From Octopus bimaculoides (lineage: Eukaryota), in assembly GCF_001194135.2 (NCBI RefSeq), contig NC_068987.1, forward strand, positions 47,562,122 to 47,626,121: 64,000 bases of DNA, read 5' to 3'. The notes below the pieces were generated by a model, which worked only from the letters and a program-made list of their open reading frames with translations, had not been told where the DNA came from and did not search any database. Positions 10,006 through 64,000 of this stretch are shown piece after piece (position 1 is the stretch's first letter; each line of letters starts with the position of its first letter). Position numbers and translations under genes: made by a program.

Positions 10006-10055
10006 AGTAGTTATAGAACCTAGTGTACAAGCAAATCCTTTTACATAGGCAAAAC

Positions 10056-10187: not shown

Positions 10188-10259
10188 GGCAAAACAAGGA
10201 GAAAATAGTACTTGTCTACCAATGGTAGAGCAAGGTATAGTATTTTGACAGTGAAAAAT

Positions 10260-12570: not shown

Positions 12571-12576
12571 GGCCTG

Positions 12577-12618
<42 letters not shown>

Positions 12619-12733
12619 TTTTATTTGTTTCAGTCATTTGACTGCGGCCATGCTGGAGCATCATCTTTAGTCGAACAAATCGATCCCAGGACTTATTCTT
12701 TGTAAGCCTAGTACTTATTCTATCGGTCTCTTT

Positions 12734-13313: not shown

Positions 13314-13346
<33 letters not shown>

Positions 13347-13351
13347 AACCA

Positions 13352-14704
13352 TTAACTTTCATCTTTCTGAACAATGTCTATGTTAAATTTCTTTAAAAGT
13401 TCAAGATAGCTTACCCGTTCTGGTATTGTGCTGGTGTTCACTTTCTTGACTCACCACTCAAAGTCCCCATCATAATCCTTTACTCTCAAAAGATACTCTG
13501 GGTCTGCCATCGCACAATGAAAGTACTTGGACAATCCCCTAACTTCTGTTGTATTCACTTTTATCGCTCTGTCCCACGAGTCTATCTCATTATAAAGTTT
13601 TTCATTTTGTTCGTTGTACAGTATAACATATTTTTTTCTCACAGGGCAAGGGTGGGGAAGATTGGGGCTCCCGTGTGCTTGTGCTTGTCTTTGTGTCAGG
13701 TGGGGCAAAGAGAGGGCTGGTGTTTGTAGGAGGAGGTTGGAGTAGAGTGGGTGTGGGATGGGGGTCATCATTTACAAAGTGTGCTTTTTTCCTTCTCTTC
13801 TTTTTTTCCAGCCGTTTCCCATCTATTCTTTTCCACATTCATCTTTTCCTCAGGGCTGGTACTGTTTTTTGTCGGTGGTGAAGTCGAGATTTCCTCCATG
13901 CTCTCGGGTTTCTCTTTAGTCTTCACGGGTGGTGGAGGACAGCCCGCTCTAATGTGCTCTTTCAGGCCACATTCATAGCATCGCAGTATCCTGCCTTCAA
14001 CTTTGACCCTGAGTGTCACCTCTTCGACCGTGATGGTCTCGACCATGTTTTCAAGGTCTTCTCGGGCCACCTGGATTATCATATCTAGGCTCTGCCCTTG
14101 CCAGTTCTTATGGGGCGTTCTGGTTGCCTGGAGGACCACTACCTTCTCTTCCGTGCCCAGCAGTATGGCAGCTGCTACCCAGGCTACATCAATTTCTGGG
14201 GGTATATCTTCTACCCTAACCCTGGAAGCACGCTTACCAAGGTATATGGGTAGAAGCACCACTTCATCCGTTTTTAAGGATGCTGCCGAGTGCAGCCTAG
14301 CAGTAGCTACCTCATGGAACTGCACCTCCACTGTTCCAAACTTTCTTCCTCTGGCAAGGTAAGAAATCCCTTGCCAGATTGGTTTTAATGCCTTTTCGAC
14401 TTGAGTGGTTGACATGATTTCAATTTTCCTTGTTGTTGCTGAGTACGTCCTGTAAATGTTTTTTTTTCCTACATTTTCTTTTAAAACTTCTTGGGGTAGG
14501 GACACTTTTATGTCGTTCCCCTCCCTTTTAAGCATTTCTTTGAATCTACTCAACTCCTCCAGACACATGTCTTCGCTTTTTCTCTTTCACCACTTCTGCA
14601 TAATTCTTCACCTCCATTGCTTCGTCTATTTTCTTCAGACTTTTAACCAGCTCTTCCCCAGACAACGTAAAGTCTGAAGAAGAACTCAAACCTTCGTATT
14701 CCAT
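13352..14704 (-). pseudogene. L1/Tx1-clade LINE ORF1 (gag-like, CCHC zinc knuckle) with frameshifts in A-runs and one premature stop
   Basis: Starts MEYEGLSSSSDFTLSGEELVKSLKK at ATG 14704. A frameshift near 14575 leads into the 266-aa ORF with CYECGLKEHIRAGC (CX2CX4HX4C). Further shifts near 13800 and 13640, TGA at 13453, terminal TAA at 13354-13352. Confidence 0.8.
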
Positions 14705-15008
14705 TACGAAGGCACGAACCTATGATCAGGGCTGGCCTTAAGCTGAATGGACCAATTGCTCCCGATTGGACCCCGCGCTCAAAAGGGCCACATTCTATAC
14801 TGTGACATATCATAAAGGTAGTTTCCCTGGTTGGGTTGCATCTTGGCGTGCAATAGAGCAAGAGACAAATTGCGCCAGTACCAACCAATCAGAGTAGTGA
14901 ACATAATAGGGTCCAAAGGTGCGGCCAAAGGCTAGCTGTTATCTACTACATCCGTATTTATGTATATATAACAGAGACAGAGAGGTTTCCTTTAGGCGTA
15001 CGCTACAT

Positions 15009-15455
15009 GCCTAAAGTTATCTATTACGTCCCCCTTGTTTGGATCTTTCTTCAGAAGCGTTACGGCTCCTCGGCTCACAAAACCGGGGATGCTCCTGTTT
15101 TGCTGCCAGTTGCAGTACACTGCTGTCAAAACGTTTCCAAACAAGTCTGGCATACAACTGTGAAGCTCGTAGGGTAGACCATCCTGACTCAGTGATTTGT
15201 CCCTCAAGCATTCTGCCAGCGCATCCTGCACTTCTGCCACCGTGATGGCACCTTCGCAGCACCTTGCCTCTCTTGCCGAGAGTTGTGGCAAGCTGTGCAG
15301 GTAGGCACTGAAGTCCACCCTGCGTTCTCGCTTGCCACTGGTCCCGAACAGCTGGGCAAAATGCTGCTGAAAGGCCTCACACATTTTACTTGGCTCGAGT
15401 AATTCGCGCCCTTGTTACCAGAGAACGAACGGTGGCTTTGTTGCCACACACACAG
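15009..15455 (-). pseudogene. L1/Tx1-clade ORF2 internal fragment (linker plus start of RT)
   Basis: GNKATVRSLV/QGRELLEPSKMCEAFQQHFAQLF...DKSLSQDGLPYEL...IPGFVSRGAVTLLKKDPNKGDVIDNFR matches KSPG.DGLP.E...G.VTL..K......N(Y/F)RPI. Confidence 0.85.
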
Positions 15456-16121
15456 GCTTTTAACTTAGAACAAGTGGATGGACAAAATGCTCCTATGCAT
15501 TTCACCCAGTATGCTAGCAATTCTGTACACTCACAATGATTATAAGAACACCACAACAAACCACAGCACATACCGAAGGCACACAGAGCTGCACTCATCA
15601 GTGCAGCGAAAGCACATGATAAAAATAAGACTACTGAATAATAATAATAACAACAACAACAGCTCCAAATGAAATAAAGAAAATAAACTTCCCATACTCC
15701 ACTCTGCTTATCAAGGTGTATATTTAGATTATCCCTGTCTAATAGTATTGATTAATCAATAACATTTATGCTTTCATTATTTCTTTCCTTTATCCTTAAA
15801 CAACTCTCAAATAAATTTGGATTAATCTGGTCGTATGACTGAACTGAAAGGTGAAAAATCTGATTAAAAAATACCTTAATGACTCATGATAATAATGACA
15901 GTAGTAATAACATAATACTAGCAGACAACTTGTTTTGTGTGATGATAATTAAAATTTAAATAGCTATATTTTGAGGATATTATTAGTTGAAATTTTTGTT
16001 TAAAAATGGTCAGCTCAGTAGTAGTAGTAGTAGTAGAAATGATAAAATAATAATAGCAACAATATTGATGATGGCAGTGGTGGTGGTGATAAGATGATGA
16101 TGATGATGACATTTTATTTCA

Positions 16122-24660: not shown

Positions 24661-24907
24661 AGTTCATATTATTTCATAGATCGAGTGAGTATTTATTTAG
24701 TTTACACTTATCACACCATCTGGACTATCGCACTAATTCTGAGCTGGTGCTCGAGTTGATTGCTCTCTTTCAGTTCACAGGGAAAGTTTTTTGTCAACCT
24801 TCAACAAGTTTTACTTTTCATACTGAATGGCTAAATTCATAAGAAAGGTATGTAAATCATTATTATTATTGTTATTATTATTGTTATTATTATTATTATT
24901 ATTATTA

Positions 24908-25578
24908 TGGTGAGCTGGCAGAATCATTAGGGCAAAATGCTTAGCGACATTTCATCCATCTTTTACGTTCTGAATTCAAATTCTGCTGGAGTCAACTTTG
25001 CCTTTCATCCTTTCAGGGTCGATAAATTAAGTACCAGTCAAGTACTGAGGTCATTGTGATCAACTTACCCCCTCCCCACAAATTTCAGGCCTTGTACCTA
25101 TAGTAGAAAGAATTATTATTATCATTATTATGGCAAGCTGGCAGAAATATTACTGTGCCAGGCAAAACGCTTAGCAGCCTTTCATCCATCTCTATGTTCT
25201 GAGTTCAAATTCTGCCAAGGTCAACTTTACCTTTCACCCTTTCAGGTTCGATAAAACAAGTACTGGTTGAGCATTGGGATCAATGTAATCGACTTCTCCC
25301 CTTCCCTAAAATTGCTGGCCTTGTGCCAAAATTTGAAATCATCATCATCATTATTATTATTATTATGGTGACAAGATGTCAGAATCATTACTGTGCTGGG
25401 CAAAATGCTTAGAAGCATTTTTTCCTGCTTTTTACATTCTGAGTTCAAATTCTGCTGAGGTTGACTTTGTCTTTCATCCTTTCGGGGTTGATAAAAACAA
25501 GTACCAGCTGAGTACTGGGGGTCAATGTAATTAACTTACTCCTGCACCCTGAAATTGCTAACCTTTTGCCAAAATTTG

Positions 25579-25615
<37 letters not shown>

Positions 25616-26520
25616 TATCATCATCATCATTATCATTATTATTATTATTATTATTGTTATTATTATTATGTGGTCCTCATGTTCGGACATGTTCTGAGTT
25701 CAAGTTCTGCTGAGGTTGACTTTGTCTTCCATCCTTTCAGGGTCAATAAAATATATACCAGTTGAACACTGGAGTCAATGTAACCAACTAGCTTCCTCCC
25801 CCAAAATTTCAGGCCTTGTGCCTATAGTATAAAGGATTATTATTATTGTTGTTGTTGTTGTTATTATTGTTAGCATGCCAGACAAAATGCTTAGTGGCAC
25901 TTCATCCATCTTTATATTCTGTGTTTCGGAGTTCAAATTCTGCTGATGTTGACTTCATGCTTTGGGATTCAATAAAATAAGTACCTGTTGATGAAATCAA
26001 CTAGTGCCCACCCACAAAATTTCAGGCCTCATGCTTATAGTAGAAAGGACTATTATTATTATCGTTATGCAAGGCATAACGATAAAATAACAGTTAAGTA
26101 CTGGGATTGATGTAATCAACAAACTCCCTCAAAATTGCAGGCCTTGTACCAAAATTAGAAATAATAATTATTAATAGGATGGCAAGCTGGCAAAATCATT
26201 AGAGCTTCAGAAAAATTGCTGGAAGTTCGGAGTTCAAACCCCAACAGAGGCTAAGTTTACCTTTCATCACTCCAGGCTTGATAAAGTCGAGTACCAATTA
26301 AATACAGGTGTTGATATAATTAGCTAACACCACCCCATCACATTTCAGGTTTTGTGCCCAGTGGATTAGAGTACATTAGCAGAATCATTAGGGCATTGAA
26401 AAAAAATGCCTTTCACAGTATTTGTTCTGGCTCTTTGTATTTTGAGTTCAAATCCTGCTGACACCCACTTTACTTTTCACCCCTTCAGGGTTGATAAAAT
26501 AAAGTATTGGGCCCGATGTA
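24908..26520 (+). mobile_element. Head-to-tail cluster of ~8 Meta-like SINE copies separated by (ATT)n/(ATC)n
   Basis: Repeated units starting near 24908, 25131, 25365, 25690, 25870, 26090, 26178 and 26375, with two different 3' tails. Confidence 0.85.
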
Positions 26521-30870: not shown

Positions 30871-31007
30871 TGCAAATACAAAGTCACATACACACACATG
30901 CAATCATACCTGCAATTTCATATGAATACAAATGAAAATAGCCTGTTAGCACTACTACATATGTACACACACACATACATATGTACCATACATAAACACA
31001 CACACAC

Positions 31008-31038
<31 letters not shown>

Positions 31039-31475
31039 CGCCTTGTCCTGACATACTGTGATAATTCTAAATAAGCCACAGCATCATACAAGTGATGTCC
31101 TTCATTTCGAATCTCCTGTGAAAAACATGTCTGCATGGAGAAATATTACCTTACATCAAGCCCAGTACTTTATTTTATCAATCCTGAAAGGGTGAAAAGT
31201 AAAGTCGGTGTCAGCAGGATTTGAACTCAAAATACAAAGAGCCAGAACAAATACTGTGAAAGGCATTTTTTTTCAATGCCCTAATGATTCTGCTAATGTA
31301 CTCCAATCCACTAGGCACAAAACCTGAAATTTGATGGGGAGGTGTTAGTCAATTATATCAACACCTGTATTTGATTGGTACTCGACTTTATCAAGCCTGA
31401 AGTGATGAAAGGTAAACTTAGCCTCTGTTGGGGTTTGAACTCCGAACTTCCTGCAATTTTTCTGAAACTCTAATG
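30871..31475 (-). repeat. Inverted segmental duplication, copy B (partner 26197-26781)
   Basis: Reverse complement of copy A. Its Meta-SINE part interrupts a host SINE between aatattaccttac (~31153) and gaaacaggtgaggg (31476). Confidence 0.9.
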
Positions 31476-31910
31476 GAAACAGGTGAGGGTTGGCAACAGA
31501 AAGGGTATCCAACCCTGGAAAATTTGATTCAACAAATTCTGTTCAACCCATGCCAGCATGGCAATGTAGGCAGTAAAATGATGATGATGAACGGAGTAGA
31601 TGTTAGTTTTCTCCTCATTTTATATTTTCTTGCTTTTATCCCATGTATTATATTCTGAGAAATCAGGATAGCAGATGGTATGTCTTTCAGAGAAGGTAGG
31701 TGATTCATGATAAACTCTGATACACTCTGTCAGAGTTGAATTGTTTCTTTTGATAATTTGTTCTTCAGTTTGTTTGTCATAATTAAAACAAACATGGAGT
31801 TGTACATCTGGTGCTATGTGAAAAAGAGACTCCAGTTATACTTGTGTTTAGACTATGCGAATTGGTCTTTGCTAAATAGATGCACACCGAAACATGAATT
31901 ATATATATTA

Positions 31911-32810
31911 CAGGGGTTGGTCATAATAATGAAAACACCTTGAAATTGCAACTATAGGATGAAATCGATCAGATAAAATGCTTAAATAGTCTTGACTATT
32001 AATTTTGCCATGGAAGGAAACCATTGGGCCAGTGGATTTCCAAGATATAGGTCTCCAGATCCTCACAGATCCTCCTCCATGTTTAACAGTTGGAAGAAAG
32101 CAGTCTGGATCAAATGCTTCTTTTTGGCTATCTCCACATGTATACTTGGCCAGTGGTCGGAAATAAGGTAAAGGATGACTCTTCTGAGAAAATAACATTC
32201 TTCCACTGCTCTAGGGACCAATTCTGTAGGTTTTTACTCCACTCTAAATGCTTTGCAATGTTTGTTTTTGAAAGTAGTGGTTTTCTGATTGCAGCCCTCT
32301 CATGAAATCTGGCGAACAGTTTTTATGGAAACTGGGCTCTTAAGATGGTCATTAAGCTCTGCAGTAATTTTGGGAGCTGTACTTTTGTGATCCTTTCTAA
32401 CAATTTGCGTAAGTGTCCAACAGTCACTTATCTGAAAGTTTTGGTTTTCTTCCAGAGTTTTGTTTCAACAAGGAGGTTTTTCCCTCTATCTCAAAGGCTG
32501 TCATTACTTTCGAGACAGTACTTCTTGATACACCAAACATTTTGGCTGTTTCTGTTACACTAATGCCTGCCATACGAGCACCAACAATTTGACCTCTTTG
32601 AAAGTCCGATAGATCTGTCATTTTAATGAATTGTAAATATCTTTTTCTGGTGATATCTGAAAAGAAACAGCAATTTTAGCAAAACATATCAAGCAACACT
32701 AATAATAAATCAAAGAACATAAAAATAAACAAGCTTTTGATGGTTTTATAGATATTTCAAAATTATGATGCTATGATGCTAGGTGTTTCCATTATTTTGT
32801 CCAACCCCTG
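31911..32810 (-). mobile_element. Tc1-family (DD34E) transposon, 900 bp, C-terminal deletion
   Basis: TA flanks at 31909-10 and 32811-12. 30-bp TIRs caggggttggtcataataatgaaaacacct / aggtgtttccattattttgtccaacccctg (3 mismatches). Transposase MTDLSDFQRGQIVGARMAG...NSGRKPKLS and PTVKHGGGSV.IW. Confidence 0.92.
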
Positions 32811-34720: not shown

Positions 34721-37700
34721 GATGGGGAAGCCACATATTTATTCCTCAGCAAGACTCATGCTCATGTCCCTCTATCATACTTTCATCTCCCTCAATTTAG
34801 GGGTTTTGTTATGTGAGGATTCAGTGATCTTGCCAGTGCTGGTGTCATTAAAAAAAAAAGCACCCAGTACACTCTGCAAAGTGATTGACACTAGGAAGGG
34901 CATCCATATGTATCTGGTAAAAACCATGCAGCTGTCAACAGCCCAGTCCATCATTAGAGACTAATGAGATGTATACAGTTCACAAGTAATGGAAGCTAAT
35001 GTCATTGCTGTATACAGAGTATTTTATTAGTTGGCAGTGCTGGTTTGAGACCCAACCTGAGTTCTTTTACAGGACTTATAAAAACTGAAGGAAAGCTGCA
35101 ATAAGTGTGTGAATCTGAGAGGGGAAATAAAATCATAATTAACTGATACTCTGGTATTTTCTTTTACTCAAAACCAGGAACTTTTCAAGCTTTCAGTGGC
35201 TCCAAAGATTATGGATCTATTGTTCACTCTGTAGTGTTTTAACCAGGTTAAACATTCCACATGTCCCACGTGAATTAATCATGTAAAATGTCCTATTTGA
35301 AAGACAGGCAGCTGTTGCATAAATTCCATTGATATAAATTAGCTCCATGTAAGCATGGTGTTGTGGGTTGAGACAGTTGACAAATTGCATTCTAAATATT
35401 GCAGAAAAACAGAGGGAAAATTTCCTTCCCCCATAAAAAGAGTAATTTTTCTTCATATAATCTACAGAAGTCTATTAAAACAGTGCCTGGAAAGTATTAA
35501 CAGGTGTTATTTGCCAGCATTGGGACATAAACAAATCCTTGAAGCACAGCTTTTAGTGTCATGACAATGTTAATAGCTATTCTTTTATTTGTTTCAGTCA
35601 TTTGACTGCAGCCATGCAGTCGAACAAATCAAAAGCCTAGTACTTAATCTATTGATCTCTTTTGCTGAACTGCTAAGTTACAGGGGTATAAACAGACCAA
35701 CACCAGTTGTCAAACAGTGATGGAGGTACAAACACAGACATAAAGACACACACACACACACATTGGGCTTCTTTTACTTTCTGTCTATCAAATCCAGTCA
35801 CAAGGCTTTGGTCAGCCCAAGGCTATAGTAGAAGATGCTTGTCCAAAGTTCCACACAATGGGATTGAACCTGGAACCATGTGGTTGGGAAGCAAGCTTCT
35901 TGGGAAGCAAGCCACATCTGCAACTATACAAATCATATTCTTTTTAAATATGTGATGTAGGCTCATGCATGGTTATAAGTGTAGGTATAGCAGTGTGGTT
36001 GAGAAGTTCATACCCCAACCACATTATTTTTGGTTCAGTCCCACCTTGGGAACCTTAGGCACATGCATTCTACTACAGCCCCAGGTTGATGAAAGCCTTG
36101 TGAGTAGATTTGGTACATGGAAACCGGAAAAAGCCCATTGTGTGTATGCGTGTATATACATATGTGTATACATGTGTGTGTGTGGGTGGGGTGGTTTTGG
36201 ATTTATGAATGTGGGTCTGGGTGCATGAGTAAGTGAATGCTCATTTATATGAGGGTGATTGTGTGTATGTTTATGTCTCCTTGTCTTGATATTGTGTGAT
36301 GGTTGTGAATAAATATCATTGTCATATAAGCAGTGTCATTTTCCAATATTCTGGGAAAATATGGCTGGCCATGGATAAATATAACTTTGCCTGCAAACAG
36401 GTGAGGGTTGGCAACAGAAATATCATCTGGTTGTACAAAAATTTTGTCTTAATAAGTCCATGGAAAAGTGGAGATTAAAATGATGATGATAGTGATGGAA
36501 GTTTTTGTTAAGGAAGATTCAAGAAGAATAATTGATTTATGTAAAGATTTATGTTGATAAATATAAAGAATTTTAAATACTTATATAACTAGGAAACTAA
36601 AATTCATTTGTAAAATTTGGCAATTTTGTAGCTACATTCTGAAATAGTCATGTTTTAAAATCCTATTATAAGTGCAGGCATGGCTGCATGATGAGAAGTT
36701 TGCTTTCCACCCATGTGGTCTTTGGTTCCATCCCACTACATTGCACCTTATGCAAGTGTTTTCCTCTATAGTCCTAGGTTGACCAAAGCCTTGTGGGTGG
36801 ATTTTGTAAATGGAAACTGAAAGAAGCTTGTTAAGCTTGTTGTGTGTGTGTGTGTGTGTGTATACACACACATATATAATACATACATATTCATGTGTGT
36901 GTGTGTGTGAATTTGTATTTGTCTCCCACCAACGCTTGACAACTGGTATTGGTTTGTTAATTACCTCGTAACTAAGTGGTTTGGCAAAAGGAGACCTACA
37001 TAAATACCAGGCAAGGATGCAGTTCAGAGACTGAAACAAGTAAAGTATAAAAGATGCCTGTGTAACATCAGAAAGTGGGTTGTTTACAAGAGGCAATTGT
37101 TCATTTTGCTTTCCTATGTCTTGATTTCCCTTAGCAATGACTTTGATTTTCCCTTCTGATCATTTAAGGAATATTCCCTCATCAACAGTAAAGTGGTTAG
37201 TATTAGGGAAGAGATCCATTTGTAGAAACCATGTCATCACTGAGACACTAGAGCAACACATGGTCTTTTAACCTCTTCAATCTTGTCAAAACATGTAACC
37301 CATGTTTGTATAGAAATCATCATCATCATCATTTAATGTCTGTTTTTCATGCTGACATGGGTTGGATGATTTGACCAGAGCTGGTAAGGCCAGGGTCCAC
37401 ACCAGGCTCCATTGTCTGTTTTGGCATGGTTTCTATGACTGGATGCTCCTCTTAACACCAACCATTCCACAGGATGTACCAGGTGCTTTTTATGTGGCAC
37501 CAGCAGCAATATCAAATCTGATGGATATTTTTCAGTAAAGGATTGCACCAGATATCTTGGTCATTAGTAATTTCCTTCATAAGGCTCACTGTCTTGAGAT
37601 CAGCCTTCAATAATTGATCCTATGTTTTCTCGGGTCTCCCTCTTCAACAAGTTCCATCCACTTTAAGTAATTGCAACTTCTGCATCCATGCACATCTCAT

Positions 37701-41008: not shown

Positions 41009-41728
41009 TGGCAATGCATCTCAACATTGCCTGGGTGTTATGACCTACAGCCGCATTGTATTATTTGTTCCTTTTTTTATGGACAGAATCAACACAGTTG
41101 ATATATAGTGAACTGGATTACTGGCGTAATGGAAGTTATTATTTGTTTAAAAGTGAAGAGGGGAGGGTACAATTAGCATGGGTTTGCATTAAAGTGCTTT
41201 CTGTTCTTAGTTTGTGATCCTTCTTATGTGTGGTTTCATCATATAAAAGTGGGTTAATATGATTTTGTGCAGAGATCACATTTTCAAAATTTAAATTTCC
41301 CCCCATCCTCACTGCAATTTCTTAATTTGTAACTTTTTCCAAGTTTTTTTTAAAAAAATTTTTTTATCCACGTAGAAAAATACAGAGATTATGAATCTGG
41401 GAAATATATATATTTTTTTAAAGTTTAATTTTTCTTAAAGAAACACTCAATGCCCCTTCCCCCACTTCACACACCCATTACCTACCTGCTTTCAAAAAAG
41501 CTAAAATCTTCCAATGTTTCACTTTCATCTGATGTTTCATGCATGCATAGAATTATACTAAAATAGCAGATGTAAAAAATACCAGACCACCACCAGAAAA
41601 CCTGACATGCTAGAAACAACAGGTAAACAACATTATTTCTTAAATTCAAATTACGACGAACGTAAATAAACAAAGTTTGCTTTTAGAAGTGTTGAGATGT
41701 CTTTAGAAAGTTAAAGAAGTAATTTTAA

Positions 41729-42011
41729 ATTCTCAATCGCAGAATAATGCTAATAATATAGCGTGAACAGGATAGATTACCCCTATTTTGCAGAGAAAAG
41801 TGTAGGTGGCTCATAAAGCGAGATTCATATATCTTAATTTGCAGAGGAATTTGTAGTGGGTAGTTTAGCTTAATCAGTCAAAGCATCGTGACGCGTAATC
41901 ATGGGGATGTGAGTTCGTGTCCACAGCTAGCCACCTACACTTTTCTCTGCAAAATAGGGGTAGTTTATCTTGTTCAGGCTATATTATTAGCATTATTCTG
42001 CGATTGAGAAT
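41729..42011. mobile_element. Palindromic MITE-like element with ~90-bp inverted arms enclosing a tRNA-like sequence
   Basis: 41722-41811 vs 41929-42018 are reverse complements with 4 mismatches. TTAA lies at 41725-28 and 42012-15, so the reconstructed empty site is ATTTTAAAAT. Confidence 0.85.
41858..41933 (+). tRNA. tRNA-like pseudogene (apparent anticodon CGT, Thr-like, non-canonical)
   Basis: Cloverleaf: GGGTAGTT/AGCTAGCC acceptor (7/8 pairs), GCTT/AAGC D stem, CGTGA-cgcgtaa-TCATG anticodon arm, GTGAG-TTCGTGT-CCAC T arm (1-nt deletion), then A-CC. U33, D-loop GG and A58 are altered, so it is unlikely to be functional. Confidence 0.6.
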
Positions 42012-44243
42012 TTAAAATCACAACATTATTTCTGTTGATTTATCATCATCATTTAACATCTGCTTTCCATGCTGGCATGGGTTAGACAGTTTGACTGGAA
42101 CTGGTAAGCCAGTGAGCTGCACCATGTTCCAGTCTCATTTGGCATGGTTTCTATGGATGGATACCCTTCCTAATGCCAATCACTTTACAGAGTGTGCAGA
42201 GTGCTTTTTATGTGCTACCAGCACAGGTGCCATTTACATGACACTGGTAATGACCACGACTTCATGGGTGCCATTTACATGACCACTGGCAATGGTCATG
42301 ACTATGGTTTCACTTGGCTTGACAATTCTCAAGCATAGCATATTGCCAAAGTCTCAGTCACTTGTCATCACCTCCATGAAGCCCAACATTCAAAGATGTT
42401 TCACTACCTTGTTCCATGCCTCCACGAAGCCTAACATTCAAAGATAATACTACTGGCAACAGCCACAACTATGATTTCATAGGAGCCATTTACATGACAC
42501 CAGCAATGGCTACAACACTTGGCTTGATGAGTCTTCGCATCCTTAATAACAATAGTTTTTAATTTAGGTACAAAGCCAGCATATTTTAGGGGAGAGAGTA
42601 AGTAAATACCATAGGCCCCAGTACCTCACTGATACTTTCTTTTATCAATTCCAAAGGGATAAAAGGCAAAGTTGATCTTAAAAGAATCTGAACTCAGAAA
42701 GTAAGGAAATGGAAAAAATACTGCAAAGCATAAAAAAATTCAATACTTTAACCATCCTTTGGGTTTTGGGGGTTCTATGCCAACAGTTCTGAGAGGAGGA
42801 GATTAGTTGGTATGATCAATTCCAGTATTTGACTGGTACTTAATTTTATTTGCCTTGAAAGGATGAAAGGCAAAGTTGAATTTGATCTGTACTAGAACAA
42901 TTACTGCAATGCATTTTCCCAATGTTCTCATTCTGCTAACTAACTGCTCTTAGTTTCTGATTTTCTGGGAAGGAGGAATAGTCAATTACATTGAGACCAG
43001 CATTTTTGTGGAAAGAGGAATAGTAAATTACATTGTCTCCAGTACTAAATGTTAAGGTCATCTTTCAGAAAATGGCTTTGCTAGTCATTGTTCCTGAACA
43101 CAAGGTTGAGCCATTAAAATAAATCATCTCCTGGGGCAATTCAGTTAAACTACACCCTTGCTCTACAATTTGTAGTCATTTAAGGCAGTGAGCCAACAGA
43201 AATGTTAGCACATCAGGCAAAATGCATCCACCTTTATGTTCTAAGTTCAAATTTCACTGAGGTCAACTTTGCCTTTCACCCTTTTGGGGTCAATAAAAAG
43301 GGTACAAGTTGAACAATAGGGTCAATAAAAAGGGTACCAGTTGAACACTAGGGTCAATGTAATTGACTAGCTTTCTCCTCTGAAACTGCTGACCTTGTGC
43401 CAAAATATGAAACCAATTTGTAGCCGTGTGCTGAAGTAAGAAATTAAATATCATTCTTACCCTTCAACTTGTCTATGGATATTCATTTTGCAACACCATG
43501 AATAGGCACATGCATAGCTGTGTGGCTTAAGAAGTTTGCTTCTCAATCACATGTTTTTGGGTTCAGTCCCACTCTATGGTATATGGAGTGTCTTCTAACC
43601 CCAGGCCAACCAAATCTTGTGAAGTAGATTTGCTGGACAGAAACTGAAAGACATCCATTCTGCATACACATACATATGTATGTGTGTGTGTTTGTGTTTC
43701 CTTGTCTTGACATCACGTGGGTGTTGTAAATGATTATCACCATCATACAAACAGTGTCCTGTTTCTAATCTTTCATGAAAAACATGTCGGTCATGGGCAA
43801 ATATTACCTTGCTAGGTGAGGGTTGGTGACAGGAAGAGCATCTAGCTATAGAAAATCTGTTTGACCTATGCAAGCATGGAAAAGCGGACATGAAAACGAT
43901 GATGATACTAGATTTGTTATAGTAAAACTTTGCATATATTTTTATTTTGCATGCATCTGTGTTTCTGCCTACGTAATGCATCTTTACTAGGCACTTGGAT
44001 ATGGCATTTGTGAAGATGTGTAGTTTTTTTTTTTTTATCATTAGTAATTATTAAATGCTACTGACCTTGTTCTCTGCATTCTAATGATTTAGGAAAAAAC
44101 AAAAAAAACAAGGAATAAGGATGTCCTTGAATTTCTCTAGGACTCTATAAATAGTGAATAAAGTGAGCTATTAGCTATAGCCATGATTCAAGAAAATATC
44201 ACAGATTTGGTAAACTGTCTAAAGTTACACATGTATATGCTTG

Positions 44244-44490: not shown

Positions 44491-47400
44491 ATGAATGAAA
44501 ATAGAATAAGATTTCTTTTTTTTAATGTTATTTACCTTGATTCTCTGCAAAAATATATTTATAGACAACCGACACCCATATTTGAACTCAGAATGTAAAA
44601 CAATGTAACTAAACATCATAAGCCCCTTTATCTGCTTCTCTACTGATTTTACCATCTATCATCATCTAAAAATAATGGCTTCAAATTTAGGCACAAGGCC
44701 AGCAATTTTGGGGGATGTGTAAGTCAATTACATTGACCCCAGTGCTCAGCTGGTACTTATTTTTATCAACCCTGAAAAGATGAAAGGCAAAGTCAACCAT
44801 AGCAATATTTGAACTCAGAATGCAATAATTCTACCAGCTTGTCCCATTTTTCAGATTTTAGTACAAGGCCAGTTATTCAGTGGGAGGAGGTTAGTTGATT
44901 ACATCTGTAGCGAGACCAATTTCTATTATGACACATTGAAGACAATTAGCCTTTTATAGGCTCAGCATGTCAATCTGTAATGATTAGTCGTTTTACCTAT
45001 CAATGTGAGTTTTGAACATTGGTTAAGCTCTGTGCTGTGACTGATTGAGTATTGTGCAGGATTTGGATTGAAATTCCAATCATGTTGCATGTAATACATT
45101 TTCAAACAACTAATCAATATGTGCTCTGGAGCCTACCTTTTCCCCATAAACTTGTGTAACAAATTATTGTAACCAGAGGTGTGAGTGATTTTCATGAAGG
45201 TGAGTTATGTTGATTTCCTGCTGTTATTAACCAGAGCAAAATTAATATAACAGGGCACATGTAACCAACAACAACCCAAGCTGAATTGTCTAAATGATGG
45301 ATGAACTACAACCATCAGAATTTCTTGTTTCTTTCTTGATCCACTGTACTACATTATGGAGGAATAGTCTCGCAGTCATTTTAAAAGCTCGTTTCTTATA
45401 TTACTTTTGTGAGTGAACGGGTTATATAATGGTATACAGGATTCATAAGTAAAACCAAGGGATACTTTAGTTAGACCACCACTAAACATTAACCCTAGTA
45501 CTCAAATGGTGTTTCATGTTATCAACCATGAAAGGATAACAGACAAAGTTGATATAGGTAACATTTGAATGCAGAACATAAAGAGATGGAAGAAATGCTG
45601 CTAAGCGTTTTGTCCGATACACTAATGATTCAGTCAGCTTACCATTTAATAACAACATAATTTTACTTTTGAATTTAGGCAAAAGATTACACATTTTTCT
45701 GGGTCTAGTAGACTTCAGTATTTTAATGATAGTTATTTGATCAAACCCAGAAGAATGAAAAGACAAAATCGCTATCAGTGAAATTTCAACTCACAAGACA
45801 TTTTCTTTGTTGCTCTACTAATCATGCTATCCACATTTTCTAAAATAATTTAAAATAATACCATTTTTTTAAAAACACAAATTAACACAAAAACAAGAAA
45901 TTTTCATTATTTTATTTCTAAGATGTAAAAAAGAAAAATTAATATTGAAAAGACAAACATATAACATTGTATTTTCAAAAGTAAAATCCAAACAGTTTTT
46001 TAAAAGTTATGATTAAAAAAACTGATCCTTTCCAAAACGGAGGAATTGCTAGCCTGGATCAGAAATCCTACACCAAAAATATTGAAAAAAAATTTTTTAA
46101 TTACTGCGAAATAAAAAGATTTTAAGGTTAAAACAACTGTAATAATAATAATAAAATTGTAGTAAGAATGGTGAAAAACACATCAAATTATATTTACTGT
46201 AGTTGGTTTATGTACTTACTATTGATCCCAGAATGCATTGCATGTAAAACTACAATTTGTGTGTATATGTATACATATATGTATATCATAAACATACATG
46301 TATAGATTTATACGCATATACATATATGTATACTTGCTTATATACAGAAATGAATATATGTACATATTAAACATACACACATATTTGCATATTTATATAT
46401 ATTGAACACGTGTGTGGATATATATACACTAAGATTCACACACACACACACGTGTGTGTGCAAGCTTATATACACATGTATGCTACAAACACACACACAC
46501 ACACCTAATTATTGGTTTTGTTGATGAGGTTTCACTCGACATCTCAGTTGCAGTGTCAACCAGTGTTCTTAAGTTGATATTGAAAAAGCAGAGACATTCC
46601 AGATGTGATCATCCCACTTCTCTGTTTCAGACAATACAGCCAGATCACATAATCTAATGTGTTCTAGCATGTTGAGTGACAACCATAGATGTTGGCTTGA
46701 TAGCCTGTATTATATGTCTTATTTATTTAATGAGAACACACAGATACATTGAAGATTTATAAAAACATTTCTAAGATTTTCTATTTGATTTTATTGTAGG
46801 AATACATATACACCAATACACCTCTTTGCAAACTTTTGTTACTGTCTTAGTCAAACAAATGAATCTTGTCATTTTACTTGCAACCTCCTGTTTCTTTTGT
46901 TAAGAACTTAACATGCATACATTATAAACAGATTTGTTTTAAATAGTATAGACATTTTCTTAAGAAATTGAATTAATAATTGACATCACTCATTTAATTA
47001 TAGCTACATAATTAACTACACAGAAATTACATAACATTAAAATGCAGAGTGCAACAAAAATATCTCATATTTATTCTTCTTGCTAAAAGTTTCAACAGCA
47101 TACACATAGTATGCACTAATCCAAACCATGATGGTCGCTGAAGAAAATTATAAAACGTTAGCTACTTGAAGACAGCATCACCAACTGTCTAGAACCACAT
47201 CAATGGCCATATAAAATATGGAAGGGTTTACTGTATTAAAAAAAACCTAACAAACTATTAGATAACCAAATGTGTAGTATGGAAACTTTCAAATACTACA
47301 TATTTTGTATGATTTTTTTAAATGACTATTTTTTTTTTAAATAGAGATAAACGGTATACCAAATAGATGAAACCAATGCTGTGTGTTTGCTAGCAGTTAA

Positions 47401-50470: not shown

Positions 50471-53356
50471 AAAAAGAGCAGGATAAAATACCACAATGCT
50501 ATAATGATTCCTTTTGACTCAATACAAAGTGAATTTTCACAGATGGAATTATTGCAAGAGTTTGTATTTATCCTAAAAATTTTTGAGAAGATGGGTTTTG
50601 AACTCAGATTACTGGATAGACAATACCAGAGTCAAGACTTGCATTCTCTTCCAACCAGCTACTAATATTACTACTGGTTTCACTGGGTTTAGCAATCTGA
50701 CCCTTACTGACCTGGTGGGCTAAGGTTTGAATATGATATCAAAGGAACCTTTAGTGTTGGTGATGGTGAGGGTACAATTATATAGTAATCAGCAGTATGA
50801 ATATATAGCTATCTGAATGTTTATGCATGTGTGTTTCTGTATGCAAATATATTATCATCAACATTTTTTTTTATTAAGGTAATGGAATTACTTTCATCTT
50901 TTCGTATCTTATTGTGGGAAGACTACCTTTCATTTTTCCAACATCAGTAGAATATAAAGCATATGTCATAATTTGGGGTGTTTGATTTAAATGGACTACA
51001 CCTACTCCACCATAATTTGTGACCTTGTGTCAATGTTGAAAATTATTATTTTTATTAGTTTTGCCTAGTAAACCATTCTCAACTATTAGGGCTTTTAAGC
51101 GGGTCCAGATCAGTCAATTCAATTCAATATCACTAGTATTTATTTTGCTGATGATAAAAATCGGGTAGGTAAAGCCGATTAACTCCCATAAGATCTGAAC
51201 CCAACAACAAGGTACCAAACTAAATACAATAAACCATTTGAGACCACTCTCCCCACCAAACACCCTCAGTTTCAACCAAATTCGTTTTCTTCATATCAAT
51301 ACATCACCATATTGCTAGCTGTGTCAGTCTTTCCTTATGTCTTCAGTGAAGCCCAAGATTCTTAGATCTACTCTCACCTCTACTTCCTCTTCTATGGTCA
51401 TCTGTTCAGCTCACAACCTATGGCATTGCTGTCTCTTCTTAACTGAAGTAATTATTTTTACAGTTGAATGCCTCTTTTTACCACTAACAGCTGAACTTTG
51501 AAGTAGGGTTGGATTTCATGTTTTTTTTTTTTCTTTGCTTAAACAATAAGAGAATGGTTGTACTGAAATCTGAACTTGAGTCCATGTGGTCTTTAGACAA
51601 ACAGGTTATTCTCACAACCACTGTGCCTCTCATGAGCTGGCATACACACATAAATCAAAACCCTATGTTAAAGCTTCCAGTGAACAGTTAATAAGGTGTA
51701 AAGGGCTTGTTCTGGAAACATGAAGCATACAACTAAAATTACTAAACAATTGCAGCTAGTAGCAGAAGCAACAACATTACTTACTGTTTTCACTCAAGCA
51801 ATGTATCAGCTCTGATACAGCAGTGAAAGTGTTCTGACCATTCAATTTGAGGACATGATCTGAGTTCAAACCTCATGGGAACTGACTATGCATTTTATTC
51901 TGCCAAATGACAGTAAAATAAGTATTAGTCATATACTAAGGTTCAGTCAATTATCTATATTTCTCCTCTACAAACCTGTCACTTTGCAGCAATGAAAAGA
52001 AAGCATTCACATAATTGAATCTAATTTTAATTCCTTCTATTTTATATTATTAATTTACTTCTCTAATTAACACAATTTCAAGTTTTTTCACATATGCCCA
52101 CATCACTTAACACCACCAACCTTTAAATTTTATTACTTTTTATTTCTTTGGTATAGTTTTAAATTTGAAAATAACAAAAACACAAAACAATTTAAAAGAG
52201 AAAACCTGAAAGAAATGTGGGAAAATTTTTTTTTTTTTTTACAAAAAATATTAATTATTTTTCATGTTTAGAAAATTTATTTTAAAATAGTCTTGAATGT
52301 GTTAATTGTAGTCTGAGAGAAAAATAGTAAAATTGATTTAGGATATTTAATGAAAAGAAGTAAAAATAAAATGTTCACCTTTTACTGCCTTGAAGAAAAT
52401 AGTTTCACACCAAATTCTTTGGTTAACCAATTATAAGAAGTCACTTTTGTTGTATAATGTATATATTGGGGTGTTGCATATGTACATAGTCTGGTGTTTC
52501 TGTTTGCTTCATTAAAGAGGGGAGGAGCACAACCCATAACTTTTGCAGGATCTCAGATGTTGACGAATGAAAGGAAGTAGAAACCACAACTTATGAGTTG
52601 TGGTTGGTTACTTCTTTAACAAATCGAAGGAAACCAGCTGGAAATCAGTAGCCACAGACAGGCATCTTGAAAGTCTGTGACTGCTAGGTCACCAGTCATA
52701 ACCTAATACTGCAGAGAGTACACGTTTAGCCAACAGGGTAGCTACCCCTGGTATTATTCACAGGAGCCAAGTTTAGTCACATTTGGCTGTGGTTCTCTGG
52801 TGGAGAACACCCTTATGTTTGTACCCACTTACTAACAACACTACACAAAGGATGGTAAAGTAAGAACAGGTGTATCAAGAGAATGAGTTACCTTCATATT
52901 GGAGATGTGGTCAAGCTACTTGCAACAGACTAGAAACTACTAAAGGCACCAAAAGACCAGATGACAGTGTCAAACCAGCAACAGATTAAGTATTGATGAA
53001 TGGATTAGGTATGGAGTAGGGGACATGTATGGTGTTAGACTGGGTGTGATGTGTAGGCCAGGTGTTGATTTGTAGTTTGTATATTGGAGGTTGATATGTA
53101 GTCTTGTGTAATGTAAAAGGCATATATAATAACACAGCTGAACCCAACTGGACATTATTTTTTCTTCTATTATCCACTTCTGTAAACTTACCATAAAACC
53201 AACTGGGATTAGAAAAGCTTTATTTGGACATTCATTTGTACTAGAAATACTAATTTTGCCATTTCAAATATTATGGAAAATGTATTTTCCAATTTTTTTT
53301 TACAACTATATGTGAATGTGTTTATGTGTATTTAAATATGTATACATAAGTGTATA

Positions 53357-53392
<36 letters not shown>

Positions 53393-53405
53393 AAACATAC
53401 ATGCT

Positions 53406-53457
<52 letters not shown>

Positions 53458-53495
53458 NNNNNNNNNNNNNNNNNNNNNNNNNNNNNNNNNNNNCT

Positions 53496-53535
<40 letters not shown>

Positions 53536-55350
53536 CACATAAATACATATTTATATATGCAAACACAGACACATAGATATTTTTTACACTTGGACAACCT
53601 TCAGCAGTGTTGTAAAACATGTCCTTTACAAAAAATAAAAGGTTAAATATAAGACCCCTCCCCCTGCTCACTTTTCCAGTAACCTCTCATGCTACAGCAG
53701 AAAGGTTACAGGGCCACCAAATGTATACAAAAGGAAGATTTCTTAGGTGTTCTGTTCCAAGAACAATCTTTCTATACCAACCATTGTCCTAATTGACATA
53801 CTTTTGTTTTTACACCAATTATATATTTGAAATATTTATTTTCCTAGAGTAGACATTTCAATCTGTATGCTCCATATTTTATTTTCACCAGTGACATCTA
53901 ACTCACATTCAGGTGAACAAGTTCTTATCTTAAAGTTATATGCAATTTAAAACAGTCATTTTAGTACAAATACACTTACAGACACAAACCACACATGCAT
54001 CTATCTGTGTGTGTATGTGTGTGTGTGTGCGCGCTTGCACGCATGTATATATATATGTATACATGCATATTACATGTGTGTGTACATATATACAGATATA
54101 CACACACTTAGACATATACATGCAAGTATATACTTAACTACATAAATATATGTATACACAGGCAGAACTTCTACAAGGTTATAACTTGCATCAGCTGAGG
54201 TCATACTTAATTGCAACACCTAGTAGCACATATACATTTATGTGTCTATATTCACACACACACACACACATACATGAAACACACAAGTACAATAGGTCTT
54301 CAGTTATAGGAAATGTGTTAAAATTACTGTGTTATTGCTATGGTAAGAAATCACTGCCACAGCTGTTATTACTATTTTTTGTTTTATATATCATTTTGAG
54401 ACATAGTCATCAATAGATTAGTGTTTGTTGCAGTAGTAGAAGACCTATATTCTCACTGTCACCCATTCTTATCACAGATGCTGTCATCACAACCGTTCTA
54501 TAGAGTAGTTGTCATTTCTATTCTTTGTAGAAACAGTTTCTGTTGACATTTTTCTTGTTTCTGTTTTTTGAAGAAAAATTTTTTCCTATCTTTTTATTCA
54601 TTTTTTAATTCCTGGTTTTGCAAAACACCCAATTCATAGCCATCAACAGATGCAGAGCCACAGTAGAAGTGGTGGTAAAAGAGACAAACAAATAATGAGG
54701 AAGAGGAGAAATAAAGATAGGCAGAAATGACTAGAAATCAGTCCAAGCTTTATAGAATTTACTCCAATTCATTTTCTTTTTGTTCAGTTCCTCCCACTTT
54801 CTCTGTGTGTCACTGTTTCTCTATCCCTATCTTTCAATTATTTTTCCTATTGTTGTAGTTTAGCAAGTCATTTTCGCTGTCAATTTATTCCCCTCTCTGG
54901 TGATATCAGGTAGCATTGCCAATCGGCAACTGACTGAGCAGCTATACTGCAAGAATTGCCAAAAATCAAGAATCTGCTGCTACCATTGTTACTGCCAGTT
55001 TGTCTTTACCAAATTTTGGTCTCATAAAAAATAAATAAAACAAAACAAAAAGAAAACTTCCTTCCCGAGGAAGAAAAAAGAAAATTGCAATTATAAAGAT
55101 TTAAATAAGTGCTGTATAAGAGATAGAGGAGCAGGAAAAGGTGAAAGAAAATAGTAAGAGCTAGAGAGAGAGGAGAGAGAGAGGAGAGAGAGAGAGAAAG
55201 AGAGAGAGAGAGACCAAGAAAGTAAGTATGAGAGGAGTAGTGAAAAACAGAAGGAAAGATTATTAGAGATAAAGAGCAAGAATTATCTAGACACAAAGTG
55301 ATAATCTCTAATAATCAAATAAAAAATTAACTGGTTCACTGTTAAGGTCA

Positions 55351-61199: not shown

Positions 61200-61979
61200 G
61201 TTCCAAATTTGATACAAGGTTAGCATTTCTGAGGGGAGGGTGTTAGTCAATACCATATATATTTGACTGGTATTTTATCTAATAATGATTTCTTACATAA
61301 ACATATGATGAACAAATTTTAAGAGAAGAGGAATGTTTGAATACATTGATTCCAATAACTGACTGGTATTTTATTTTTATCAACCTCAAAAGGATGAAAG
61401 GAAAGTTGACTTTGGCAAGAATGACTGACATAAAACAAGGTTAGAAATGTTAATAATAATAACAACAATAATAATAAAAGAGAAAGCATGATGCATCTAG
61501 TTGCTGAAGACATAGCATGCAACAGTGACAAAGATAAAGAAATGCAATAAGAAAATATTTTTAAAACAACAACTACAATGCAAACAGATTTCAAATGAGA
61601 TGATAATCTTCAATTTTCAAGTTCTAACTCTGGAATAGAATAACAATGATTTGAGACTTGACAAACATGCGTGTGTATGTTTGTGTGTGTGTGTGTGCGC
61701 ACACACACACACACCTGCACGTATATATTCAAAGCTGAGGATTCACATCAGGAAAACATTAATTAGCTTCAAATAACTAAAAGGCTACAACACAATGAAA
61801 ACTTTTTCTCCCACTCGTGCACCCCAACACATATGAGTTTGATAGAAAGTGTAAGTATTACTAAAAGCACAACTGTATTCCAAATTTCATAATAAATATT
61901 AATTTTTTGCAAAGTAAGCTGTCCCCTATCACACAGATACACAATATGTCAGTGAACACACCAATAGATAGATACATAC

Positions 61980-62041: not shown

Positions 62042-64000
62042 CTGTACAAATGATTTTATAGTAATCAAATGTTGCATTAGCTCTCTCCCTTCATCAAATC
62101 AATATTGCCTGAACAGGTGTATAGTGTGCTACATGTTAGGTGTTGAGATTGCTGAGCAACATAAGATGAAGTCTTTTGCTAGAGAACACAAGGCACCACC
62201 TGGTCCAGGAATTGAAACCATGATCTCAAGATCATGAGTGCAACACCTTAACTAATAGGCTATGCGCCCCCATACATATATAGATATGTATGTGTGAATT
62301 TGTATTTTCTAATTAATCAGAGAAGCTGCACATATGACATCACATGGTCATTCCACTTTCAGAATAAGATTAAGATTGACTTTTTTTGCATGTTCGTGTG
62401 TATGCATCAGTAAATATGTGCTCATGTATAAACACAAGTTTACATATGCATGCACATCATGAACAATATTTGTGCTTACCAATTAACCACCACTTATACA
62501 TACACACACAAATGCTTATTATTACCAACCCTATACACATGCACATACATCACAACACATCACTGTTAAATTTGAAATATAATTTCAAATTTAAAATACC
62601 ATTATTCACACACGCACACACACAGAAAATGCTTTCAGTTCATCCTATGATTTCACTGATTATGTCAGAGGAGGCAGATATGACCTTTAGCAGACCCAGA
62701 AATGCCTGTGTGTGTAAATTATTTATATACTGAGCATTCTGCAGCAAATATTTAAAACAATAGTGCAAGCTGCTGAAGTAGGAGGATAAGGAAGGGTGGA
62801 TGAAGAAACAGCAACAAATTATTGAGATTTATTTTCTTCCCATCACATCACCAAAACACCCAATTTTCCTGTCAATCTGTCAGAAATTCAACCCTGTTGA
62901 TGTTAACTCCCACTTCTTACTAGCCAAAGGATTATAAATTGTATGTTTTAGACAATATATAGTTTTATTTGAAGTTACAGCATCATTCCATCATTACTCT
63001 ATATTTTTTATTACTTGTAACAGCAATGACAGATTGTGGTGGTAACAATATACCTTGACTATTGCACTTTCAGCTACACATAAATATGAATAAACTCTGT
63101 TACATGTATGGGGGTACAGTTTCCTCAGATTAGGACACAATCTTATAATCTTTGTATGAATTTATATATATGTGTGTGTATGGTTTTATTTCAAATTATG
63201 TATAAGAATTTAATTTTAAACTGAAAGATTACTCTATACTTTTTAGTAGAGTATTAATTTATTAATTTTACAAGTAAACAGTTGACAATGGCTTCAAAGT
63301 TTCAGCTTGTTCATCATTGTCAGATGACATGTATGTATGAATATAGATTTTTTTGAGACCGACAGTTTGTCTTACAACTTGAGTTACATGCACCTGTTTG
63401 TCAAGCAAGAGTAGCAGCATGAAGCTCAAATCACAAGATACATTTTCAGCTTTAGTTTCAATAAAAATTATTTCCTCTATGACATGTTTTGAGCATTCCT
63501 CTCTCATTTGTCTGAAATAAATCAACATACACACATATATTTATATGTGTAGAGAGAGAGTTGGGAGGGAAAATGAAAAGATGGGCAGATGGTCAAAAAC
63601 AAGAATCATGGGTTTCACAAGTAAGTTGATACATGGCCAAGAAGTGTTGTAAGTGAAATCAGTCCAATTTATGCCAGTAGTGAATAAAGAAGCGAATCAC
63701 ATATATATCTTGGCTTTGCAAGTGAAGATTTATGAGAGGTATGTCTATGTTTGTTGTAAGCTTGCTGATGCCTGATGTGTCCAATTTGGGACAAACAGGC
63801 ATGACTGTAGAGGCTGTATGGGAAGTTAGACTGTTCAGCACTAGTTGTAGTATCCTTGTGTTTACTCCGTTTTCTCTTGCCTGCAAGGATGACCCTGCAG
63901 ATATCTTCACAGGAGGCTGTTACCTGGTGGACAGTGAGATGCTAGGCTTCATGGTCAGTGACAAGAGCAGACCACTGGTGGTGATCAATGTGGCTGGCAC

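Follow-up and report, generated by a model that had tools for sequence, protein, structure and literature searches.

A degenerate tRNA-like module within long inverted repeats of the Octopus bimaculoides genome: support for a young insertion of mobile-element type

INTRODUCTION

L1-type target-primed insertions are bounded by target-site duplications (TSDs) with a modal length of 14–16 bp, and inverted forms arise via twin priming with 2–5 nt of microhomology (PMC2912911). Insertions of Penelope-like elements often carry an adjacent inverted, 5′-truncated copy together with a one-sided extension (PMC8557442). In Octopus, hundreds of families of short interspersed elements (SINEs) have been recently active, as have L1-Tx1, CR1, RTE and Penelope elements (PMC13282606), and most octopus SINEs are tRNA-derived (PMC13282606; PMC8967140). 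Here we analyse a locus of Octopus bimaculoides at which a tRNA-like sequence is enclosed by long inverted repeats and lies within a unit bounded by a 14-bp direct repeat. The window, i.e. the entire stretch of DNA that was analysed, covers 64 kb of CM046607.1 (GCA_001194135.2; ~47.56–47.63 Mb). Positions are those of the window; adding 47,562,121 converts them to chromosome positions.

An initial annotation, made from the sequence alone, had described the locus as a possible tRNA-carrying MITE (miniature inverted-repeat transposable element). Our data support the view that the tRNA module inside long inverted repeats is a young, inserted sequence of mobile-element type. This part of the proposal is retained, whereas the identity as a MITE could not be established.

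RESULTS

A CpG-rich, asymmetric unit is bounded by a perfect 14-bp repeat

Repeat alignment bore out the two 90-bp arms, four mismatches and 117-bp core that had been proposed for the locus. The left arm (41722–41811, − strand) and the right arm (41929–42018, + strand) are complementary at 86 of 90 positions (95.6%) and separated by 117 nt. They are identical over the inner 34 nt and the outer 41 nt. Among the close inverted repeats of the window, the resulting 297-bp palindrome ranks second in length, and no other long one comes near it in quality of match. We also weighed an assembly artefact and put this possibility aside, given four differences between the arms, a unique loop and a distance of 750 bp to the end of the nearest run of N.

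The palindrome does not stand by itself. A perfect 14-bp direct repeat, ACAACATTATTTCT, is found at 41627–41640 and at 42020–42033 (both + strand), and these are its only occurrences in the 64 kb, even when one mismatch is allowed (0.18 expected). The right copy starts 1 nt past the right arm, after a single C at 42019 that is read directly from the sequence, and 81 nt separate the left copy from the left arm. Thus, the 14-bp repeat encloses a unit of 379 bp (41641–42019; CM046607.1:47,603,762–47,604,140, ~47.60 Mb) that is made up of an 81-bp unique extension (41641–41721), the 297-bp palindrome and one further nucleotide, and that is asymmetric. In a scan of the window, 14-mer direct repeats less than 600 bp apart occurred almost only in SINE arrays and zinc-finger repeats and were essentially absent from unique DNA. 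Most of them come from a cluster at 24890–26030, a tandem or closely spaced short repeat family with spacings of ~240–255 and 460–495 bp.

The unit also differs from its surroundings in composition. The window has 35% G+C and a CpG observed-to-expected ratio (o/e) of 0.235. The palindrome holds 8 CpG with an o/e of 0.82, which confirms the CpG retention in a CpG-poor area noted before. The one-sided extension, or ‘leader’, which lies outside the inverted repeat, has 3 CpG in 81 nt at 27% GC (o/e 2.3). In total, the 379 bp contain 11 CpG and fall in the top 5% of all 379-bp windows, compared with 3 CpG per 600 bp in each flank. This CpG enrichment extends over the entire unit and its extension, against a CpG-poor background, and points to a single young insertion. 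The extension showed no significant similarity to the palindrome, to either flank (both strands) or to the rest of the window. The simplest unit to which these observations point is therefore 41641–42019, a young asymmetric insertion with a 14-bp duplication at its edges. A copy of an abundant, CpG-poor SINE (42038–42290) begins ~5 bp past the right 14-bp repeat. This SINE family ends on the + strand in (ATC)n-ATTTAACATCTGCTTTCCATGCTGGCATGGGTT and is present at at least eight further sites (3887, 6175, 8056, 8694, 31591, 34527, 37322 and 38778).

When folded as RNA, the + strand of the 379-nt unit reaches −181.7 kcal/mol, compared with −79.6 ± 5.4 kcal/mol for shuffled sequences (z = −18.8). 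For the − strand, z is −17.8 against shuffles. The coding capacity of the palindrome is limited to chance open reading frames (ORFs) of at most 39 aa.

A tentative reading as two inverted copies with a common 3′ end

The explanation that we rank first, tentatively and at somewhat less than even confidence, is a single target-primed retro-insertion consisting of two inverted copies that share a 3′ end. The ~379-bp sequence would have been inserted fairly recently, through target-primed reverse transcription at a break whose two nicks were offset by 14 bp. Its source would be the RNA of a short non-autonomous element that carried a tRNA-Thr-derived module ~90 nt from its 3′ end. This RNA may have been copied twice from the 3′ end, once on each side of the break. 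The longer copy, 41812–42018 (sense on the + strand), of which the right arm would be the 3′ part, would extend across the tRNA-like module. The left arm would be a shorter, 5′-truncated inverted copy of the element’s 3′ end (41722–41811) that ended after 90 nt, and the two copies would have been joined head to head. What look like 90-bp terminal inverted repeats would then be two copies of the element 3′ end (...GAGAATTTAAAAT) and not transposase-binding ends, and the overlap of the arm with the tRNA would reflect no more than the chance end point of the short copy. The left 81 bp would be a one-sided extension or filler. Enzymes of the long interspersed element (LINE) or the Penelope-like type, both present in octopus, might have supplied suitable machinery. 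On a single-insertion view, the pre-insertion site would read ...GGTAA ACAACATTATTTCT GTTGATTT....

Several features argue for this explanation. The 14-bp repeat is perfect, unique in the window and placed 1 nt and 81 nt from the arms, and it thereby supports target-primed insertion. The outward ends of both arms are the same nucleotide, as expected of two complementary DNAs (cDNAs) that started from the 3′ end of one RNA. On the inner side, the repeat stops at an arbitrary point of the tRNA-like acceptor stem, which we also count in favour of a retro-insertion. Finally, the uniform youth of all 379 bp fits one insertion edged by the 14-bp repeats.

The core is a degenerate, tRNA-derived sequence

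The tRNA-like sequence (41858–41933, + strand) is preceded by a 46-nt 5′ flank (41812–41857, + strand), and its last five nucleotides belong to the right arm. An Rfam search of the local region 41600–42150 (551 bp, E ≤ 10) matched RF00005 at 41859–41932 (+) over the whole model (1–71), with 21.7 bits compared with a gathering score of 29. The E value of this match was 0.052 for the 551 bp and all 4227 families and 6.1 at the scale of the whole window, in which it is the sole Rfam tRNA match. ARAGORN did not call a tRNA at the core with default settings. At a threshold of 90%, it reported a tRNA-Thr(CGT) at 41858–41935 with an ACC 3′ tail. Position 33 of the core is G where U would be standard (anticodon loop CGCGUAA), the T stem contains two non-standard pairs and the acceptor stem a G·G, and the single-sequence fold is unexceptional (z = −1.7). 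Owing to the sub-threshold scores, G33 and the T-stem and acceptor defects, the core is not an intact or working tRNA gene; it is tRNA-derived and degenerate, a pseudogene of tRNA-Thr(CGU) type or a tRNA-derived module. The complete tRNA cloverleaf of the initial annotation thus stands with respect to its full length, and falls with respect to its intactness. The tRNA 3′ end does form the inner end of the right arm, as stated there, with its last 5 nt plus CC (AGCCACC). The core was also said to be unlike the SINE heads of the window, and we found no resembling SINE head in it.

The layout of the tRNA-like part resembles that of an RNA polymerase III (Pol III) gene. A TATA-like box, CATATATC, lies in the 5′ flank at 41826–41833 (+ strand; −32 to −25 relative to the tRNA-like sequence), an A-box-like TAGCTTAATCAG and a B-box-like GAGTTCGTGTCC can be read in the core, and a terminator-like TTTT run at 41941–41944 (+ strand), within the right arm, follows 8 nt past the discriminator base. 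Since the start lies inside the loop and the TTTT just inside the right arm, the predicted Pol III transcript is a short tRNA-like RNA. A transcript folding into a tRNA on a 90-bp double-stranded RNA (dsRNA) stem had been envisaged. This is not what an internal Pol III unit would yield when it starts inside the loop and meets TTTT 8 nt past the tRNA 3′ end. A long hairpin RNA is to be had only through read-through transcription from outside.

These signals bear on the question of function. A working tRNA-Thr(CGU), or a selected hairpin RNA locus serving as an ADAR, Dicer or microRNA (miRNA)-like substrate, would account for the Pol III-like anatomy with its TATA-like box, A/B-like boxes and TTTT. 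Any read-through transcript would make a very stable 90-bp duplex, and three of the four arm mismatches are G·U pairs in the + strand RNA. We nevertheless consider a functional gene highly improbable, as the sequence scores below the Rfam and ARAGORN thresholds and has G33 and a damaged T stem, as a Pol III transcript would lack the left arm and extend only 8 nt into the right one, and as finding all three transitions in the form of G·U amounts to a 1-in-4 chance.

The arrangement is also unlike that of a SINE, with 217 nt of the 14-bp-bounded unit, and 136 nt of the palindrome, preceding the tRNA-like part. In place of a terminator-free body followed by a 3′ tail, there is the TTTT at 41941–41944, and a tail is seen at neither end of the unit. 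The perfect 14-bp repeat does fall within the ~5–20 bp of a SINE TSD, bounding the 379-bp unit rather than the palindrome.

The position of the tRNA 3′ end raises a further alternative. The primer-binding site of long terminal repeat (LTR) elements comprises 10–18 nt complementary to a tRNA 3′ end including the CCA (TGG...). The idea that the left arm holds such a site was not upheld, because the left arm complements just 7 nt of the tRNA 3′ end (GGTGGCT), and the next base is A where T is needed. A strong-stop-like trace of tRNA-primed reverse transcription would take the left arm as a template ending in the primer-binding site, and the tRNA plus right arm as a primer with its cDNA. The topology fits, in that the left arm has GGTGGCT at its end and its reverse complement comes next after the tRNA-like AGCCA-CC, and ARAGORN draws the ACC 3′ tail. 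On the other hand, with 7 nt of complementarity, the base opposite the terminal A of CCA is unpaired, the joining of template and product would have to run through 46 unrelated nt, and neither LTR or retroviral features nor an ORF are present. Such an origin appears very hard to sustain.

Differences between the arms and an internal sub-repeat

The four arm mismatches (41763, 41770, 41775 and 41777) all lie in one 16-nt patch (p = 0.014), in which 41763–41777 pairs with 41963–41977; three of the four are G·U in the + strand RNA. At all four positions, the right-arm base equals that of the tRNA-like 5′ end ~100 bp upstream. Positions 41958–41977 of the right arm match the tRNA-like 5′ 20-mer at 17 of 20 nucleotides (p = 0.001), compared with 13 of 20 for the left-arm version, and all four mismatches fall within this stretch. 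It looks as if a short conversion patch or two slightly different templates gave rise to these differences; editing is another possible cause. The outer arm was examined as a tRNA in its own right and rejected, since only its first 20 nt resemble a tRNA 5′ end and a second Rfam tRNA match was not obtained at E ≤ 10. On the outer side, beyond the mismatch at C42019, pairing runs 2 nt further into the 14-bp duplication (93 nt, 94.6%).

A shorter repeat is nested in the palindrome. The inner part of the left arm contains a sub-repeat U (TATTTTGCAGAGAAAAGTGTAG; 41784–41805, + strand), of which a diverged extra copy, U′, matching at 18 of 22 positions, is located in the 46-nt flank (41835–41856, + strand). 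Alignment of U+4 with U′+4 gave p = 0.0025 against shuffles. Together, U′ and the inner right arm (41935–41956) make up an imperfect inverted repeat of 22 nt that encloses the tRNA-like sequence directly. We also tried to read the 46-nt flank as a decayed inverted tRNA 3′ half and discarded this possibility (p = 0.998 and 0.63).

The nested repeat could have seeded priming in a one-off fold-back (snap-back) inverted duplication, in which a break at a dispersed tRNA pseudogene and its 3′ flank was repaired with the help of an older short inverted repeat, U′ and the reverse complement of U, around the tRNA. No mobile family would be involved. The arm boundary inside the tRNA and the single copy in the window agree with such an event, and cephalopod genomes offer tens of thousands of tRNA-derived loci (PMC6962438). 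It would, however, leave the 14-bp direct repeat and the CpG-rich 81-bp extension unexplained, and templated repair would hardly be expected to reach the size of a 90-bp snap-back around a 117-nt loop. Moreover, all of the unit is younger than the flanking DNA, a sign that it came from elsewhere. We regard a fold-back origin as quite improbable.

Comparison with a long inverted-repeat MITE

The palindrome has much of what defines a MITE: terminal inverted repeats (TIRs), a small size (297 bp) and no coding capacity. A TA or TTAA duplication had been proposed for its ends, and the letters ATTTTA and TAAAAT are indeed present. They lie inside the inverted repeat, and the duplication is not separable from it, because only even palindromes (TA, TTAA, TTTAAA) can abut both arms, and these look just like a continuation of its base pairing. 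At the arm ends, we found no non-palindromic direct repeat abutting the arms, including repeats of 3, 8 and 9 bp. Elements of the piggyBac type have TIRs beginning CCC...GGG and a TSD of TTAA. With TTAA as TSD, the element considered here would begin with ATTCTC and end with GAGAAT. A cut-and-paste MITE alone does not explain the asymmetric, 14-bp-bounded unit.

The window provides a control in the form of a hairpin MITE at 10056–10187. This element is 132 bp long, with 56-nt arms (98% complementary) and a 22-nt loop, and an unambiguous 8-bp direct repeat, GGCAAAAC, touches both of its ends (span 10048–10195). It is located in a CpG-rich zone, has telomere-like repeats facing each other in its centre (GGGTTAGGGTTAGGG ... 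CCCTAACCCTAAC) and gives spurious mir-3718 matches on both strands.

The main rival of a single retro-insertion, less probable in our judgement and on balance unlikely, is a succession of two nested events. First, a 92-nt 5′-truncated retro-fragment (41641–41727 plus 42015–42019) would have been inserted with the 14-bp duplication. A long-TIR MITE, either of the Tc1/mariner type (TA) or of the TTAA type, carrying a captured tRNA gene or pseudogene with its flanks, would then have entered the palindromic target ATTT-TA-AAAT, 5 bp from the end of the fragment. In essence, this second step is the MITE of the initial annotation. The MITE-like size, the AT-richness, the near-perfect long inverted repeats and ends in keeping with TA/TTAA at an AT-rich, palindromic target all fit. 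The gene-like flanks of the tRNA (TATA-like box at −30, TTTT at +8) are expected of capture at the DNA level, and repeat imperfections at fixed positions are normal in a MITE consensus and would account for the four mismatches. In addition, recent activity in Octopus is documented for Tc1-mariner, piggyBac and MITEs (PMC13282606), and a SINE-derived domain is reported to have spread within a DNA-transposon derivative, with MER6 and its V domain as the example (PMC6887750). Against these points, the scheme calls for two young insertions within a single stretch of 92 bp, just 5 bp separating the second from the end of the first. The TSD is inseparable from the repeat, whereas that of the control MITE is clear, the termini are without the CCC/GGG established as typical of piggyBac, and a second copy or partner is absent from the 64 kb. 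An arm that overlaps the tRNA 3′ end is also odd for cargo between TIRs.

A stronger form of this idea would make the palindrome a member of a long-TIR family of non-autonomous DNA transposons, in each of which the loop would be an entire tRNA-like Pol III gene, equipped with TATA-like box, A/B boxes and terminator. This appears improbable. If true, a cut-and-paste element would scatter Pol III units and potential TFIIIC/insulator sites through the octopus genome.

Searches for further copies

Searches with blastn (word size 7) and nhmmer (--max) revealed no second copy of the arms, the core, the extension or a hypothetical ‘tRNA-body-tail’ SINE in the 64 kb. Matches of 140 nt at 63333–63468 (61%, E = 0.01) and of 26 nt at 42324–42349 (77% identity, E ~0.6) are at chance level. 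A partner element sharing the terminus AATTCTCAATCGCAG, as had been suggested, was not found within the 64-kb window. An ORF of 96 aa at 31908–32198 (−) with ...VKHGGGSVRIW... is reminiscent of the C-terminal part of a Tc1-like transposase. It has no Pfam match, and no terminal repeat resembling the arms was found near it.

Searches of large public collections, which are not collections of cephalopod DNA and therefore yield only weak negatives, gave the same picture. A concatenated six-frame peptide query found no match among 5.8 billion proteins, and a 50-aa left-arm ORF gave only two repetitive-looking chance matches among 1.84 billion representatives. Exact look-ups of ORFs within and beside the element returned no record. 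The terminus 21-mer was absent from metagenome and viral contigs, and a 24-mer across the tRNA/arm junction was absent from metagenome contigs. Five neighbouring ORFs had no Pfam matches.

Other elements in the window

The only other CpG-dense stretch of the window is 9400–15600, with 11–17 CpG per 379 bp. It is interrupted by an N gap (12734–13313), and its long − strand ORFs at 13768–14568 (266 aa), 14992–15384 (130 aa) and 11930–12337 (135 aa) look like the remains of young retroelements. Pfam searches with the long ORFs of this stretch found nothing. The 266-aa ORF has a single relative with 58% identity on a 2.3-kb Logan contig, found in three Logan contigs (SRR11869385/390/391). At 6317–7240 (−), the window contains a 307-aa ORF for a C2H2 zinc-finger protein with several fingers, which is intact and called as a gene in GCA_001194135.2. 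A protein search with a C2H2 zinc-finger query returned overwhelmingly vertebrate matches. Dozens of sub-threshold Rfam ‘miRNA’ matches (mir-297, mir-466, mir-3149 and others) fall, often on both strands, on (TA)n/(TG)n-type repeats and palindromic microsatellites, for example at 53350–54290, 46258–46430, 61664–61732, 36837–36922 and 30964–31044. These are low-complexity hairpin artefacts and not miRNA genes.

DISCUSSION

For the young, tRNA-containing unit described here, we tentatively infer an RNA intermediate, an origin from two cDNAs and an enzyme of the LINE or Penelope-like type. A number of observations weigh against this inference. Both ends of the unit lack a poly(A) or simple-repeat tail, the 64 kb hold no related copy of arm, core or extension, and the Rfam search of 41600–42150 revealed no hammerhead ribozyme at E ≤ 10. 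The extension is 81 bp long, compared with the 30–40 bp described for Penelope-like elements (PMC8557442). Inverted insertions of the Alu type are very rare in humans, with one example (PMC2912911), and an overlap of 90 nt between two copies is atypical for twin priming. The clustering of the four arm differences in 16 nt (p = 0.014) is unexpected of copies from one RNA, and the extra U′ copy is unexplained. In addition, the TATA-like box at −30 and the TTTT at +8 suggest that the module originated at the DNA level and not in a Pol III-driven SINE, and the ends are compatible with a TA/TTAA cut-and-paste element.

Should the retro-insertion nonetheless be the right explanation, the locus would be a tidy but ordinary case of complex target-primed insertion, in a genome where SINEs, LINEs and Penelope-like elements abound. 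It would then also call for caution in repeat annotation, as two inverted cDNA copies can mimic a long-TIR MITE. If, instead, the MITE explanation is right and the element is multi-copy, a DNA transposon would be spreading a Pol III unit, which would be relevant to the origins of SINEs, to tDNA insulators and to the supply of long dsRNA for ADAR in cephalopods. Most likely, the locus does nothing today; at most, it may give rise to a short Pol III tRNA-like RNA or, by read-through, to a long hairpin.

The locus can be compared with five described systems. Twin-primed, 5′-inverted LINE-mediated insertions share with it a TSD of modal length, here 14 bp, and two opposed segments within one duplication (PMC2912911). 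In both, the inverted segment abuts the duplication, here with a possible microhomology of 2 nt. In contrast to them, the unit is without an A-tail, and its segments overlap by 90 nt rather than being adjacent parts of an RNA. It also has 81 bp extra on one side and would derive from a short RNA related to tRNA, a type of template whose inversion is very rare in humans. The architecture also recalls that of Penelope-like insertions, with what would be an inverted 5′-truncated copy beside the main copy, inverted repeats that consequently flank the unit, and an extension at one end (PMC8557442), and Penelope elements are abundant and recently active in Octopus (PMC13282606). Unlike them, the unit of only 379 bp has no hammerhead, no ORF of the reverse transcriptase/GIY-YIG type and no similarity to any Penelope-like element in the window, and its extension measures 81 bp as opposed to 30–40 bp.

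MITEs of the Tc1/mariner or TTAA type, including those with SINE-derived modules such as MER6 with its V domain, are similar in size, AT-richness, long inverted repeats and hairpin potential. They also share the TA/TTAA-compatible ends and a foreign Pol III-related module in the middle. The locus differs from them in that it has no unambiguous TSD and no copy or partner in the window, in that its unit is asymmetric and bounded by 14 bp, and in that the arms overlap the cargo. Octopus tRNA-derived SINEs (tRNA-Core, tRNA-Deu and many unclassified families) likewise combine a tRNA module with A/B-like boxes, a TSD of retroposon length and youth. Here, however, the tRNA-like part is not at the 5′ end, a TTTT follows after 8 nt, there is no tail and the sequence is unlike the SINE heads of the window. 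Tailless tRNA retropseudogenes, finally, show a tRNA-like sequence followed by CC, which is joined here through 5–7 nt of possible junction microhomology (PMC2912911). They differ from the locus in their source, which in the present case would already have been a degenerate tRNA-like element, because the core is far from any intact tRNA and yet still CpG-rich, and in the gene-like 5′ and 3′ flanks seen here. Taken together, the evidence favours an insertion of a known, if complex, kind over a new class of tRNA-carrying transposon.

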